This document shows positions 26,304 through 49,902 of a DNA stretch of 64,000 nt, piece after piece. Each line of letters opens with the position of its first letter. Position 1 is the stretch's first letter. The stretch spans positions 13,588,698 through 13,652,697 of the forward strand of contig OZ037765.1 in the NCBI GenBank assembly GCA_964035545.1, read 5' to 3'. Below the pieces are notes generated by a model. That model saw only the letters and a program-made list of their open reading frames with translations. It searched no databases and was not told the origin of the DNA. This stretch comes from Bugula neritina. Its lineage: Eukaryota > Animalia > Bryozoa. The translations under genes and the position numbers were made by a program.

Positions 26304-28777
26304 TCATCTCATCTCATCTCATCTCATCTAATAAATCTCACTCGGAGCGCTTTGGCTCCTTTATCGAGATGCAGTGGTGTATGAACAATTGTTTAGATTA
26401 TAAGTAGTAAGGAAGAAAACCATTTTGTCTACAAGATAAGAATATAGTTAATTATGCTTTGATTCAAAGCTCCAATAGCTAGCTACTGCCAGAAAAGAAG
26501 AAAAAAAAAGAAAAAAAAAAGTAAATAAATAAATAAATATACACCGCACAGTTTCAGATGATATAAAGCAGAGTCGGTGTTAAGTGCTTATAATCAGTTA
26601 GGCAAGCAGCTAGAATCATTAGAAAAGTTTATGGATGCGATGTTTATATGAATGTTTGACAGTTTTGGTATTGATATTGCCCTTAATAGCACCATGTCTG
26701 GTATTGTGAGACTCTGCAAAATGAAGGGAGAACCAGTCTTGGTCTATAGCGGCACTACCAGAAAGCATACGAAAGTACATTTTTTGGTCTGCATTGTCAC
26801 GTCTTTGTGCAAGGCTATCCCAATTAGAATTTGTCATGAGCTCAGTTATATGATCTCGTTTTCTCTTACAGAATGTCCACCTGAAGGCTTTTCTATTTAT
26901 ACCTTCTATGATGTTGATGTTTTTCAATTTAAATGGAGACCAGGTGTGGGTCGCAAATTCTAGTATAGGGCGACAGACTGTTTTATAAGCTATGGCTCTG
27001 GTTTTACTTTTAGCCTTTTTTAGACAGCGCATCAGCATGTGTAATAATTTATTAGCTTTTGAGCAAATGTTTATTATATGTTGATCGAATGACAGTTTAT
27101 TATCAATCGTGACACCAAGGTATAATACTTTGTCAACACATTGTAAGGGGTCATTATTCATGCTGTATTGAGACACTAGAGGATTTACAGTGGAGCGTTG
27201 AATTGTCATATGCTCACATTTATTTATATTGAACTTCATCTGAGAACTGTCTGCCGAAGTTATAAGATGGTCTAAGTCATTCTGAAATAAACTAGAATCA
27301 GCAGGTGTTGTGATTGGTTTGTACAACAAGGAATCATCTGCATATAGTTTAAGCTTGCTGTTAGCTACCGCAGAGTGCATGTCATTTATGTACACATTAA
27401 ATAACAATGGTCCTAATACACTGCCTTGGGGCACTCCTGAGGTCACATGTCTAGTGGCCAATTTGACGTTGTTGACACAGACTGAAAGAAGACGGTTCTG
27501 AAGCCATGAAAAAATCCATTTGACAGTTTTATCAGCTATTCCGATATTTAGCAGTTTAACCTGTAGTTTATGGTGCGACACAACGTCAAAGGCCTTTGAA
27601 AAATCCAAGACAGCGAGATCAACCGGTATCATTTTGTCGAAAAAATCTATAAATTCACTCACGGTATTCAACAACTGAGTATCGCAGCCATGATTTGTCC
27701 TGAAACCATGTTGGTGTGGGTAAAACAGGTCATTTGATTCGAGGAAACAGTTGATATTATGTGATACGATATGCTCGAAGATTTTGGATATGATAGAAGT
27801 GAGTGATATTGGCCTGTAATTCAGCGGGTCTGTACGACTTCCTTTCTTGAAGATCGGTACAATGTTTGCTGTTTTCCACTCTTGTGGTGTCTGAGATGTA
27901 TCGTAAAAGTACTGAAAAACCTTTGTCAGGGGCTCATATATATAATGTGCAAGATATTTTAGAAGTGCAGGAGAAAGCTCATCTGGGCCAGCACCTTTTC
28001 GTGGATCGAGTTTGGTGAGCTGTGTTAGGACTCCCCGAGGATCAAATTGTATAGGAGATGATATAGTTTGAGGTGGAATGCAGGGAGGGATATTACCATC
28101 ATCAATAGAAAACGCAGAAGCAAAGGAGTCCGCAAAAGATTCAGCTATAGCAGTATTGTTGTTAGGGAGATGTTGTCTAGTTGGCGTACAGTATTTGAGC
28201 TGCCCTTTTTACTTGCTATGAACGATAAAGAGGTTTTGAATCACCCTGCTCTAATGTATTGCATATGTGTTTGTTTATATAATTATTATAGTCCCTATTA
28301 CACAATTTCTTGCAGTACCGGGACTGGGTGGCATGTTTTAAAATGTTGTGCGGGGTGCGATCGTTAAGGCAAGCTAGGTGGAGGTGTTTTCTTTTTCTGA
28401 TCTCCCTTTTAGTTTCTTGGGATATCCAGAGTTCTGATTTTTTTTTTCTAAATTTGTATGGGATATTGGAATGTGCTACCTGAAGTATTCCAGATTTGAG
28501 ATTATGCCATAACTGTTCAGCGCTACATTTCTTAGAGATATCTGAGGTGATTTTACAATGTAGGGAGTAACAGTCCACGGTGATGTTCGTTATGTCTGCC
28601 TTTTCAAACTGCCAATATGGTTTTGGTTTGGTTAAGGATGCTGTCCTTCTAATAACATTATCCGCCAACACATTGAAATTGATAATAAAATGGTCAGAGC
28701 AGGATGACTCAACTCGGGGGTTAGTGGTAGTTACATTTGTAACAACTAGATCAAGCGTATTACCTTTGTCGTGAGTG
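26304..28777 (-). mobile_element. 5'-truncated LINE (CR1/L2 supergroup): end of endonuclease, RT, 3' UTR and microsatellite tail
   Basis: 'PTHDKGNTLDLVVTN...SDHFII' (end of APE domain), 'GPDELSP', 'NYRPISLTS', 'DFSKAFDVV', 'GVPQGSVLGPLLF', 'YADD'. The frame is open from ~28200 to 26619, with frameshift(s) near 28150-28225; 3' tail (GATGA)n at 26304-26328. Confidence 0.92.
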
Positions 28778-44844: not shown

Positions 44845-47800
44845 TTATGCTGAATCTCGGTCAACAAGTAATAAGTCATTAAAATGACCTTCTGCAATAA
44901 GCTGAGAATACTGTTCTTGCGAGAAAAGCTCAATGTTGGCCACTTGATGAGGATAATCACATTCTATGTCTTTGAATGCTTGGCTGAGCACTACTGCCTG
45001 GTAGATAGGACCATCAAATCCTGGAATCTCTTCGCTGTCTACTACTTTGCCAACAAACATTCCAGCTGGCTTAAACTGAGCTCCAACCTTCACATAGACT
45101 AAACTTCCACAATCTCCTCCAACTAGACTCCTAATACACAGCAAATCATGAGAATAAGACATTTGGCAATTTTTATTAATTAATAAAAAAAGTGAAAAAG
45201 AAATCATGATTATTTAAATTAAAACAACTTTATTCTTTTTGGTTATTTTCTCTCTCTGGAAAAAACCGTTTAAGGACTTTTTAAAATTTAAAGTATAGGT
45301 ATACTACGTCTTACTCATGCGGTCTCAACTTACAAATTAGCTCCAGTCATGACTGGTGACACCAACACAAAGGTCATGTGGTGACCTAATTTTTGACCAT
45401 TTCTTTGATAGCGTCTGGAAACAACCCTTCCTAGTATACCCTTGACTATCAAATCCTTTCCAGCCAGCTCTTGCAGATCTCCTTCGGTAGGGATTTGTAA
45501 AAGTTCCGTTGAAAATGGGTTTTTCTGTTTCTGAATGCCATTTATCTTATTTGTAGGTATTTCTCGAAAAAAGGTTTGAAGCCTCTTATCTAAGATATTT
45601 TGCAAATACGAAACCTGCTTGTGGTTAATTTGAAGAAGTGCCAAATCATTCATGAACTTGTGAGGACAGTGTGATTCATATTGAGAACCACACTTTAGTT
45701 CTGGACATTCTGGTTGTTGTTGTGATTCACTTCTAGTAAAGACAGATGTTAGTCGAGTGTACCAGTGGCGATAACTAAGCAACACTGGATGCTGCAAATC
45801 GGCAATTTTGAGGCTCTTTTGACTTTCCGTTTTTATGTAATATTGCCTTCTTGTAGATCTACTTTCAACTTGAGCTCTTACCCTTGAAATTGATGGCAGG
45901 TTTTCATCATCACTGTCATCATCAGACACATGGTTTAGATCACTTTGCTCTTCCTCAGTTTGACTATTAGATGGCTCTGTGCTGGAGGTCGTCTTTGATG
46001 GACCAGCCAATTGACAACTGTAAGCTAAAGCATTTTCAATGTTAAGCTCAGTTCCACATTCCTGCATAGTGGCCTTCTTCATATAAAAGCTATCAGCTGC
46101 AGCTGCTTCTTTATTTTGCTTGTCAGCAAGAACCAAGTGTGCTGGAGCAATGGCATAGACTATCCTACATGGCATATTGTTGTCAGCACTTATCTTCTCT
46201 GCAATAACAAATGCTTCACAGACAGTTTGTTTTACTGAGTCAGTCCACAGCTTTTCATTCTTTAATGTTTTCTTTTTGTTGATAGTCAGAACTTTCTCCC
46301 AGCTTAGTGTTTTCATTGTGAATGGATTGTTGCTACTCTTTAAAGTTACTTCAAACCTTGTAAGCGATTCACTGTGCAGGTACTTCTGAAGGTCTGGTTG
46401 AATTTTTAAAACATTTCTTCCAAGCACTAAAATTTTTCTCCAATCAATAGCTGACTGCCCAAAGGTAGCATCACTTATGTTGTGGCTGTCAAGAAGGCTA
46501 CAACACATGAAGCAAATTGTCAAAAATTAGATAATACCTATAAACTAATAACAATGAATTGAAAATTTATTAGAGCACTAATAGGTTGAAATCAATCAAT
46601 TTGTTTTATTTTATTATGCGATGATAAAAAACCCACTTTTCAATAGTGTCCATTAGTGATTTTGGTGCAGGTTCATAAAGTGCATCTGGTGACAAGTTTT
46701 CTGTGACATGGTTTAGTATTACAGGTCCTGCAACAAGTTGTGTGAAAAACACAAAAGTAATTGTTGATATTGAAATAAATTGTGCTTTTCAATTTTAACA
46801 ATAAGTAACAAATTTAGACTACCTTAGTTGCTTGTCAGTTATTGTTAGCGTTTACTTTATTGCTCAAAGTGCTATATATTTGAAATGCCTTATGCTCTGC
46901 TAAGCTTTGATGGTCTGTCATGCTCTGAAAACTTATTTTTAATTAATTTTAATAAGCTCTCTATCTTATTATATTTTGAGCTAAAATATATTAGTTTGTT
47001 TACAGATTTTAAGTAGACTTAAATTATGCTTCCCAATAGTAGACTTGAATCTAAATTATTTTCCTTGCAAATCCGACAGTTCAAAAGATCTGAGTCTTTT
47101 TGGAAAACTTGTTTTTAAATAAATAATCTCAAGATTTAATGCTATGATAAAAGGTATAAGTAAAAACCAACCTAAACCGTATTTATGTACAGGAAAATCA
47201 CTATTATATCCTGGTAAAATACCAGCTATATATAATTGTTACAATTTTAATTGAACTTTCCAACACAGACTAATTTCAAAAGTGTGAAATCTTCAAAGTT
47301 TGCTACTGGTTTAGGTACACGTTTGTTTGTTTTTACTATTATTTTCTATATAAAAAAAGATAATATTGCCACTTTTGACTGTAAATTATATAAAGGTTTA
47401 TCGGAGGTTAAGTGATAAATATGCAGAAAAAAAGTATTGAGAAGTGATTGATGATACTGCCACTTTAGTTTTAAATTTGAAATATACTTGTCAGACAACA
47501 TATAACAATTAGTGTGCAACAAGAATATGATAGGTAAAAATGCCAATACAAAAAAAATAAGAAACTGTTAATTGGAATATTATTGATATAACTGAATAAT
47601 TAGTATATTTTACCATTATTCTCAATTAGACTTATAGGCTCTTCCTCCTTTTGAACATTTGCAGCAGTATTTCGGTTTACAGAGTCAGCTGCTCCACATG
47701 CTAAAAAAGTTTAATCCTCTAAAATTTCAGTCATCTATTCACTTTAGAAAGACTCTGCTCACCAAAATTATACAATACAAAGTGCAGCGTAGAGCATCAA

Positions 47801-47862: not shown

Positions 47863-47916
<54 letters not shown>

Positions 47917-48327
47917 CTTGATTAATATATATTATGCTTAACCCACACACCCATTAACAAATGCAACTTACGAAGTGGAAAATACTCATATCCTGGTGAA
48001 TCTCTCCTTGTTTTTTTTGATAATGTTGATAAATTGCTGTTTTCAGAAAGCAAATGTTTCTTTACAGCTTTTTGTGTCTGTTGGTGTTGAGTATCTCCTG
48101 CAATGATGATAAGCATCATATAATAGTGTATATTAATATGTACATACTCTGATCTGTGCTGATGAGGGGACAAATCCCGAAACAGCTGCTGTCCACAGAG
48201 TTTACACACCTTTTAAATATGCTTTAGTAGAAACATAAGTTTCTACTATTGCGAAGGTGTGGGCCATGGTACTCTGTTCTGTGCTGATGAGGGGACAAAC
48301 CCCGAAACAGCTGCTGTCCACAGATTG

Positions 48328-48407
<80 letters not shown>

Positions 48408-49902
48408 CACACACAGGCGCGTAGGGACTGGCCATGTAACATAATTAAATGTCATATGCTGAAATAAAAAAAGATAACAAAGCACATGAAGATCAAAGAA
48501 AAAAATAACCTAAAAGAAGTTTATCATTACTAAGATCTGATCCAAAATATAATGTGACTGGAGGAAAGCAATTCAATTGACGAAGTGAAAATATTTGAAA
48601 ATCAAGAAGAAATCATCAGTTACAAAGTGGGTCTATTAGACCATTTTCCAATTTCCCTGATACATGCTGAAATGGCAGCTATGATATAAGTCCCAATAAT
48701 CATTTGTTGTGCTGACTGTCATCACTCTGTTTATAGTTGTCAACCCTTCAACTCTTTAGATAATAAAATGGTCAAGTTACACTGTATACAGTAGGCAGCA
48801 TGCAATTATGATATATAGATGGAAGGATAGATGAATGGATAGATAGATCGAAAGATAGAAAATTTGATAAATATTGTTTACGTTGCTATATGCATGTCCT
48901 TAAAGTAGTAGTGTACTACTTACCTAACTTTTTTGTGCTGCTTGTTTCAAGTTCAAACGCTTGCCTCTCTATGCTGAAAAGTCTGCCAATATCATCTGTT
49001 GACATCATTTCAGCTATGCTTTTGATTATTTCTGAATGACCATTGAATGTGATGAAATGTATTGCTGTTTGACCATTTTTATTCCGAAGAGTGAGCAAAT
49101 TGATTAAGTTAGCTGTCGGTAAAGACTTGATGATAAATTGAAGAGGTTTTTGATGAACCGCCTGTGCTGCATTGTGTACAGATGTATTGCCATCTTTATT
49201 TTGTAAACTGAGTAGTTTGTACAAGTCAGCTGCTGGTACAGAGTCTAAAATGCATTTTGCTGTCTCTGTATGACTTCTTTCCGCTGAATTGTGTGCAGCT
49301 GTGTTACCATCTCTATTCTGTATACTGAGTAATTTGTACAACTCAGCCGCTGGTACACAGTCCAGAATACATTTCACTGTTTCTGCATGGCCCCACTCTG
49401 CTGCTCTGTGCAGTGCTGTATTACCATACCTATTTTGTATACTGAGTAATTTGTACAATTTAGTCTCTGGCACATGTGCTAGAATGCATTTTACTGTTTC
49501 TGTATGGCCCCATTCTGCTGCCCGGTGTACAGTAGTATTTCCATATCTATTCTGTATACCGAGCAGTTTGTACAAATCAGCCTCTGGTAATTGTTCTACA
49601 ATACATTTCACTGTCTCTGTATGAACATTTTCTGCTGCATTATGTACAACAGTATTCCCATACTTATTCTGTATACTGAATAGTCTGTACAAATCAGCGG
49701 CTGGTACAGAGCTTAGAACACACTTTACTGTTTCGATATGACCTTTATCTGTCACGTTGTGTACAACTGTATCTCCATTGTCATCTTGTAGACTTAGCAC
49801 TTCTAATTTATTTTCATTAGAGAGAGAGGTCAGTGTCTCCTTGAACTTAACCAAGTTATCCTCAGCGGCATAGTCTTTCAGCTGATGGTAAACTTCTTCC
49901 AT
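44845..49902 (-). CDS. Ankyrin-repeat / trypsin(chymotrypsin)-fold peptidase fusion, about 910-930 aa, Cys at the nucleophile position
   Basis: Exons 49902-48924 (7 x 39-aa ANK), 48097-47972, 47700-47614, possibly 47225-47172, 46727-46637, 46497-45334, 45130-44845; phases are compatible. Triad-like motifs YAIAPAHLV, NDLALLQI, GGDCGSLV, followed by PAGMFVG. Linker exons are less certain. Confidence 0.7.
47868..47910. repeat. (TA)n microsatellite
   Basis: Seen directly. Confidence 0.95.
48153..48199 (+). ncRNA. Type I hammerhead ribozyme, copy 1
   Basis: Stem I TCTGTG/CACAGA; core CTGATGA; stem II GGGG-ACAAA-TCCC; GAAA; stem III ACAG-CTG-CTGT; GUC triplet, predicted cleavage after 48193. Confidence 0.88.
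48278..48324 (+). ncRNA. Type I hammerhead ribozyme, copy 2
   Basis: Stem I TCTGTG/CACAGA; CTGATGA; stem II GGGG-ACAAA-CCCC; GAAA; stem III ACAG-CTG-CTGT; GUC triplet, predicted cleavage after 48318. Confidence 0.9.
48331..48404. repeat. (TA)n microsatellite abutting the ribozyme pair
   Basis: Seen directly. Confidence 0.95.

Follow-up and report, generated by a model that had tools for sequence, protein, structure and literature searches.

Two hammerhead motifs lie 125 nt apart in the 64-kb stretch of Bugula neritina DNA that we analyzed (the window; C1:13588698-13652697). An earlier note on this sequence took them to delimit a retrozyme-like RNA unit and suggested that the unit might belong to a new minimal family. 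We asked whether the 125-nt unit is an element in its own right or a derivative of a larger one.

Reading and alignment both recover the 55-nt direct repeat on which the note was based (48145-48199 and 48270-48324; two mismatches, 96% identity, period 125 nt), and each repeat copy does carry the conserved core and three helices of a complete type I hammerhead. Both copies, as read off the sequence itself, have the form UCUGUG-CUGAUGA-GGGG-ACAAA-(U/C)CCC-GAA-ACAG-CUG-CUGU-C|CACAGA. The core comprises C3-A9 (CUGAUGA), G12-A14 (GAA), an A15.1-U16.1 pair and C17 at the cleavage site. Helix II is a 4-bp GGGG/CCCC stem (GGGG/UCCC in copy 1) closed by the loop ACAAA, helix III a 4-bp ACAG/CUGU stem closed by the loop CUG, and helix I an open 6-bp UCUGUG/CACAGA stem. 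Closed helices II and III with an open helix I make this a type I topology. The predicted cleavage sites, after C48193 and after C48318, bound 125 nt.

A descriptor of the core and three stems, applied to both strands of the 64-kb window, matched at exactly these two places and gave 0 matches in 200 dinucleotide-preserving shuffles. The Rfam hammerhead models, which the note had proposed as a check, fail to score the motif even in a canonical copy of the family described below: nothing in the window reached a gathering threshold, and the hammerhead-clan models gave no match at E<=10 to the window copy or to the canonical one. RAGATH-1-hammerhead aligned the core weakly (19 bits, E 0.63, against a 56.3-bit cut-off). 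The RNA between the predicted cleavage sites (48194-48318) folds to -47.1 kcal/mol as a linear molecule (z -4.8) and to -42.4 kcal/mol as a circle (z -5.1). The three spacer stems that the note had listed – a 10-bp hairpin at 48225-48234/48239-48248, a stem at 48205-48212/48254-48261 and a third at 48196-48201/48271-48276 – are all present in the minimum-energy fold and dominate the predicted fold in both forms. We also observed that the helix III stretch ACAGCUGCUGU (48181-48191 and 48306-48316) is nearly self-complementary between molecules, over 11 bp that include one U.U mismatch, so that two hammerheads could pair as a dimer with a long helix III in common, as proposed for newt and Penelope-like element (PLE) hammerheads.

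We looked for related sequences genome-wide, in 216 Mb comprising 321 contigs. A 35-nt hammerhead query gave 540 matches at three or fewer mismatches and its reversed control gave 0; the note's suggested copy-number check thus turns up other genomic copies, ~540 hammerheads in all. With a 180-nt query we obtained dozens of matches of 98-100% identity, to query positions 54-180 only and 272 nt apart. The normal unit junction, GTC|CACAGATTGAGGTATTATGC (26-mer), has 107 genomic matches, and exact tandem hammerheads with the normal gap of ~237 nt number 64. Arrays hold one to five units and border directly on (TA)n and unique DNA; that at C9:3146067-3147281, for example, has 5.1 copies with a period of 272 nt and 99% identity, with (TA)n on both sides. 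Most insertions carry a single hammerhead. A genome-wide search for other CUGAUGAG-type hammerheads (patterns CTGATGAGH and CTGATGAGGH) gave matches in about the number expected by chance. We considered hammerheads 1.9 kb apart (C6:3941858/3943765) as the ends of a longer element and rejected them: they represent a local duplication of an insertion with its flank, and there is no ORF.

The ends of these insertions follow one pattern. At least 377 terminate identically, at GTC|CACAGATTGAGRTA, within (TA)n (control, 0), and all ~21 independent loci that we sampled end in ...GCTGCTGTC CACAGATTGAG(G/A)TA followed by (TA)n. This 3' end lies 15 nt beyond the hammerhead cleavage site. The 5' ends at the ~21 loci vary, with truncation anywhere from unit position 7 to 253. 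An invariant 3' end, 5' truncation at varying points and a microsatellite target together bear the signature of target-primed reverse transcription. Because every insertion crosses the cleavage site – including the hammerhead, its GUC and 15 nt more – we infer that the template of family copies was an uncleaved multimer or a re-ligated circle, an argument already made for retrozymes (PMC7229834).

Several sampled copies depart from the common arrangement. One aberrant unit (L015 1776-2003) lacks positions 229-272 and hence has no hammerhead, and in another copy (L030 1342-1621) 8 nt, CTGCTGTC, are duplicated right at the cleavage site. At three loci (L025 1230-1766, L064 4056-4183 and L065 4082-4697), 5'-truncated copies form head-to-head inverted pairs that recall the inverted structures typical of Penelope-type insertions.

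Animal non-LTR retrozymes are non-coding tandem units of 150-450 bp with a type I hammerhead (Cervera & de la Pena 2020, PMC7229834), and the family resembles them closely. Its short units of 271/272 nt are tandem and non-coding (in the 272-nt unit, the longest stop-free stretch is 49 codons), have a GC content below 50% (46%) and carry one type I hammerhead each. They have no LTR, PBS or PPT, and they co-occur with autonomous PLEs, as described below. The unit RNA is highly structured – a circular fold of the 272-nt unit reaches -103.5 kcal/mol (z -7.3) with 71% of its bases paired. The family is dispersed in many copies and bears signs of retrotransposition, neither of which holds for the single-copy 125-nt form. 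By these sequence-level features it is a young, abundant animal non-LTR retrozyme. The note's reading of a stand-alone, non-coding, retrozyme-like element with type I hammerheads is therefore supported, with the 271/272-nt unit as the element.

We aligned the window copy by BLAST to a natural 272-nt unit (L006 1507-1778, minus strand) rather than to a consensus. On the + strand, 48145-48199 (block 1) corresponds to a 5'-truncated first unit, positions 224-272 followed by 1-6, and includes the hammerhead 1 core (48159-48193, a descriptor match). The adjoining spacer (48200-48269), which contains the 10-bp hairpin and the stem around it, matches positions 154-223 with 100% identity. Unit position 6 is thus joined to position 154 at a GA microhomology (48198-48199), where the two BLAST blocks overlap by 2 nt, and positions 7-153 are missing – a loss of 147 nt that turns 272 into 125. 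Hammerhead 2 (48270-48318, core 48284-48318), found by pattern search, BLAST and descriptor alike, is identical to the commonest family form. It is followed by the terminus CACAGATTGAGGTAT (48319-48333, unit positions 1-15), the same as that found genome-wide, which merges into a (TA)n microsatellite (48331-48405). From its sequence and the ends of insertions genome-wide, this tract is the insertion target of the family; the note had correctly described the unit as abutting it. At the other end the element joins its 5' flank at a TA; this flank (47912-48144) is host DNA whose only match in the genome is itself, and an upstream (TA)n tract (47869-47911) precedes it.

Mutations are unevenly placed along the copy. 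The second block, counted from the junction (48198-48333; unit positions 152-272 and 1-15), is 100% identical to the reference over 136 nt. Block 1 has two differences from it: A48152, a private change within the helix I internal loop, and T48175, the common helix II G.U variant. The G-U/G-C change that the note had seen in stem II is real, but it is a family-wide polymorphism, the T form of which is present in ~199 copies.

This polymorphism is one of ~12 diagnostic sites at which two subfamilies differ, A (272 nt) and B (271 nt), as judged from a comparison of one A unit with two B units. Two clean double compensatory changes distinguish A from B, C-G to U-A at positions 26/50 and G.U to U-A at 103/142. 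Both arms of the 10-bp hairpin change together with complementarity kept, one G-C pair being removed from the two arms in a re-registered hairpin, and helix II changes from G-C to G.U. Given the compensatory changes between subfamilies, the RNA structure of the family appears to be under selection. The compensated helices fall within the 147 nt that the window copy has lost. Its block 2 is A-type; the T in its block 1 is typical of subfamily B.

Taken in copying order, the window copy starts at unit position 15, runs back to 154, skips 147 nt at the GA and continues from position 6 to 224, where its far end stops against unique host DNA. We consider it very probable that 48145-48333 is one defective, 5'-truncated insertion of the abundant 271/272-nt retrozyme family. 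Under this model, a unit RNA would have been copied by target-primed reverse transcription at (TA)n, the 147-nt skip would be either a template jump of the reverse transcriptase or a later genomic deletion, and the two hammerheads would bracket 125 nt by accident. Were the + strand transcribed, self-cleavage at both sites could free an RNA of 125 nt ending in a 5'-OH and a 2',3'-cyclic phosphate, and a tRNA ligase might then circularize it.

The effect of the missing sequence on the ribozymes differs between the two motifs. Hammerhead 2 and canonical copies have a distal part of helix I with an internal loop; hammerhead 1 retains only the proximal 6 bp of this helix because the deletion removed the 3' partner. 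With the distal half of helix I lost and a private change in the loop, hammerhead 1 is probably weak in vivo. By secondary-structure thermodynamics alone, the catalytic fold is improbable even in canonical copies: its probability, computed from constrained ensembles that ignore tertiary contacts and give relative values only, is 1e-4 to 5e-3 in canonical copies, 3e-7 in hammerhead 2 of the window and 1e-10 to 1e-6 in hammerhead 1.

We next consider which enzyme could move the family. Cervera & de la Pena reportedly found hammerheads in the pseudo-LTRs of Penelope-like elements in 2014. With the relaxed pattern CUGAVGAG we identified a second hammerhead class in this genome, with 153 matches against 49 for the control. 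These hammerheads have a minimal helix III (1-2 bp) with the palindromic loop UAUAUA, and they occur in inverted pairs 2.5-3.9 kb apart, inside (TA)n, around a 708-aa ORF. The ORF had no match in the Pfam copy searched or among PDB sequences, and shows YRDD, a Cys-rich linker (CNC...CPLDGKC) and an IYQ...YVG region. Animal data contain 2712 homologues of ~700 aa; the best-scoring one, from Solemya velum, carries Pfam GIY-YIG, the bryozoan Watersipora subatra is also among those named, and Atlas look-alike clusters carry both GIY-YIG and RVT_1. On the evidence of these domains in its relatives, the element around the 708-aa ORF is a PLE. Genome searches for PLEs with the Pfam profiles themselves were not useful – GIY-YIG found only a host SLX1-like gene, and RVT_1 was swamped by LINE- and LTR-type reverse transcriptases.

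PLE sequences of two families were read at the sampled loci. At L069 4339-8562 (G000:C3:12878338-12882561), and also at L067, L068 and L070, a PLE lies in (TA)n, and the inverted terminal copies around its 708-aa ORF carry the minimal hammerhead CUGAGGAG-UGCAG-UUUA-CUGCA-CGAAAC-UAUAUA-GUC. Its ends have a short form and a 'tail' form ~95 nt longer, both of which finish in ACATTATA(TA)n. The second family (L002 1800-2200, minus strand) has an ORF 47% identical to that of the first and a hammerhead with a GUA cleavage triplet, CUGACGAG-UGCACAUCG...-CGAAAC-UACUA-GUA; ~55 nt of (TA)n separate its 3' end from a retrozyme copy that follows.

The linkage to Penelope elements that the note had proposed to look for is present in the genome, as co-occurrence, though not in the window: 4 of the ~21 independent retrozyme loci have PLE coding sequence no more than 1.5 kb away. 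At the junctions that we read (L002, L015 and L016/L067), (TA)n separates the PLE from the retrozyme. The two kinds of element also have a hairpin in common. Just past the insertion end, the retrozyme has the hairpin GCUCUCAC...GUGAUUGAGC (unit positions 14-60, e.g., L006 1719-1765, minus strand), and the tail of PLE-A has GCUCUGUCAC-CC-GUGAUAUCGAGC just past the short-form end (L069 5827-5855); judged by eye, the arms are alike. This common hairpin may serve the reverse transcriptase as a recognition signal. Since the two kinds of element are co-located, use the same target and have this one hairpin in common, the enzyme of the PLEs in the same (TA)n tracts most likely moves the family. The retrozyme hairpin lies within the 147 nt that the window copy lacks and, if it is such a signal, the 125-nt RNA could not be mobilized. 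As modelled, without the structured 147-nt domain and the hairpin common to PLE ends, the 125-nt RNA is a dead end rather than a propagating family.

Contigs from RNA libraries give some view of transcription, although the ends of molecules and any circular form are beyond what contigs can reveal. The family is represented in contigs of X14, the one run on record as RNA, and of X1 and X2, which we guess to be RNA. One X14 contig extends beyond 48329, where the matched stretch ends on its 3' side, and reads into the beginning of the next unit; this suggests that transcripts cross the unit junction in uncleaved or re-ligated form. Where contigs join the window copy at 48198, the sequence upstream is that of the full-length unit (...CTCTGGCTT). 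The window junction CACAGA|GUUUACAC was not seen in RNA-library contigs, which break at the repeat, as do DNA-like contigs (X15).

How the 147 nt came to be missing is the main point on which readings of the locus divide. Rather than through a template jump, a normal insertion of 1.2 units could have lost 147 bp later by microhomology-mediated deletion, through slippage or end joining at the GA; this history is quite possible, though short of probable. The 2-nt microhomology at the junction fits it, and both block 1 differences may be ordinary post-insertion mutations (P ~0.08 that both fall in block 1 by chance). Arrays that mix T and C helix II variants also exist (e.g., L063). Against a later deletion, however, block 2 has 0 mutations in 136 nt and block 1 has 2 in 55 nt, one of them diagnostic of the other subfamily, and internal skips occur in other copies (e.g., L015), as error-prone reverse transcription predicts. 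A template jump is slightly favored, since the block 1 variant is typical of the other subfamily, and the window copy may be an A/B chimera produced by such a jump, a suggestion resting on a single polymorphic site.

The other readings concern what the 125-nt unit is. That it is a functional minimal retrozyme, founder or member of a new small family and processed to a rod-like 125-nt circle, is unlikely: neither hammerhead core is damaged, the predicted fold of the 125-nt RNA is good in linear and circular form and block 2 matches active-looking family copies with 100% identity, but the form is unique in the 216 Mb. Its junction, CACAGA|GTTTACAC (23-mer), has no second occurrence in the genome at two or fewer mismatches. 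Gaps of 31-123 nt between hammerheads occur only at the window locus and at C3:18730973, the latter a chance juxtaposition of two separate insertions in one (TA)n; this case aside, the window locus stands alone genome-wide in having a tandem spacing below ~160 nt. A unique junction and a unique short period mean that there is no 125-nt family. The copy is moreover 5'-truncated, hammerhead 1 has a reduced helix I and a private loop change, and the predicted probability of the catalytic fold, on the same relative scale, is put at least 1000-fold under that of canonical copies. The deleted 147 nt hold structure supported by compensatory changes as well as the PLE-like hairpin, the junction appears in no RNA contig – contigs entering at 48198 having full-length upstream sequence instead – and the + strand has no known promoter. 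The new minimal family that the note had proposed is thus not borne out, the 125-nt unit being a shortened 272-nt unit. Nor is its length below the described range, as the note had allowed, since catalogued retrozyme consensus lengths of 51-972 bp include 125 (bioRxiv 10.64898/2026.07.22.740005). We regard it as highly unlikely that the period is an assembly artefact, a collapsed or mis-joined repeat. Contigs do break at the repeat, none in four runs bridging 48151-48200, but two sites distinguish the blocks, the 5' flank is unique and runs on without a break, and a 5'-truncated block with a microhomology at its join is a less likely product of a collapse than a clean unit would be. Least probable is that the unit is the pseudo-LTR of an autonomous PLE, a reading that the note itself had set against a stand-alone element. 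PLEs with hammerheads are present in the genome, in the same (TA)n tracts, yet tblastn across the whole 64-kb window gave no PLE coding similarity, and the unit flanks no ORF with reverse transcriptase and GIY-YIG domains. PLE hammerheads are also of another, minimal class (CUGAVGAG-UGCAG...-CGAAAC-UAUAUA-GUC), and a (TA)n tract lies between neighboring PLEs and retrozymes; the stand-alone reading stands.

Taken as a defective insertion, the window copy matters little alone: it is a dead-on-arrival mobile-element fragment. A more speculative idea, which we think unlikely, treats it as a deletion experiment made by nature. Transcription of the locus, if it occurs, would give a 125-nt circle processed by the hammerheads; the 3' 125 nt would suffice for processing, and the lost 147 nt with the PLE-like hairpin would be needed for mobilization. 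In this view the A/B chimera would testify to a Penelope-type reverse transcriptase having switched templates between two retrozyme RNAs.

The family is of broader interest as a clean animal retrozyme example, with hundreds of young copies and one fixed 3' end in (TA)n. It is new as a member of a kind already known, by its sequence features, and within it the window copy is a singleton and defective. Compared with described animal non-LTR retrozymes, the family is unusually clean in combining the fixed 3' end in (TA)n with variable 5' truncation, and most of its insertions in Bugula neritina have a single hammerhead; the window copy differs from them in being a singleton whose 125-nt period results from an internal loss of 147 nt. 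That all copies span the cleavage site argues for a circle or an uncleaved multimer as the reverse-transcribed template, and the hairpin common to retrozyme and PLEs points to the enzyme that moves the family. These features support published hypotheses rather than open a new one. An insertion bias of PLEs for (TA)n has been published (Craig et al. 2021, PMC8557442), animal retrozymes are viewed as PLE-dependent (PMC7229834; bioRxiv 10.64898/2026.07.22.740005), and retrozymes have been presented as PLE derivatives (bioRxiv 10.64898/2026.07.22.740005).

Comparison with other hammerhead-bearing elements places the family further. Like PLE pseudo-LTR hammerheads (PMC8557442), it has a type I motif, a (TA)n bias, complex tandem or inverted insertions and a similar hairpin past the insertion end. 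Unlike the minimal PLE hammerheads of this genome, which flank a 708-aa ORF resembling reverse transcriptase and GIY-YIG proteins, the retrozyme has 4-bp helices II and III and no ORF. Newt satellite 2 and Schistosoma Sm-alpha are likewise arranged in the genome as tandem or SINE-like repeats and have type I hammerheads whose helix III is short. Their helix III region, like that of the family (CAGCUG), is palindromic, so that ribozymes could dimerize, but the family has no sequence relationship to them, its copy number is much lower and its insertion is specific to (TA)n. Plant LTR retrozymes and Avsunviroidae are alike in their hammerhead-bounded RNA, predicted cleavage and circularization and compact fold. 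Both of these groups carry type III hammerheads; plant retrozymes are 600-1000 nt long with LTR, PBS and PPT, and viroids replicate from RNA to RNA with no genomic DNA copies.

Within the window, the element lies on the + strand and is bracketed by two minus-strand ORFs (45330-46523 and 48916-49902). The latter encodes an ankyrin array (Pfam Ank_2, 8.8e-29), and the orientation of the element is antisense to it, as the note had stated; the former, of 397 aa, has no Pfam match even at E<=10. It is plausible that both ORFs belong to one gene and that the element sits in its intron. About 20 kb from the element, a 351-aa minus-strand ORF (26619-27674) with a match to Pfam RVT_1 (5.2e-22) represents an unrelated retroelement.
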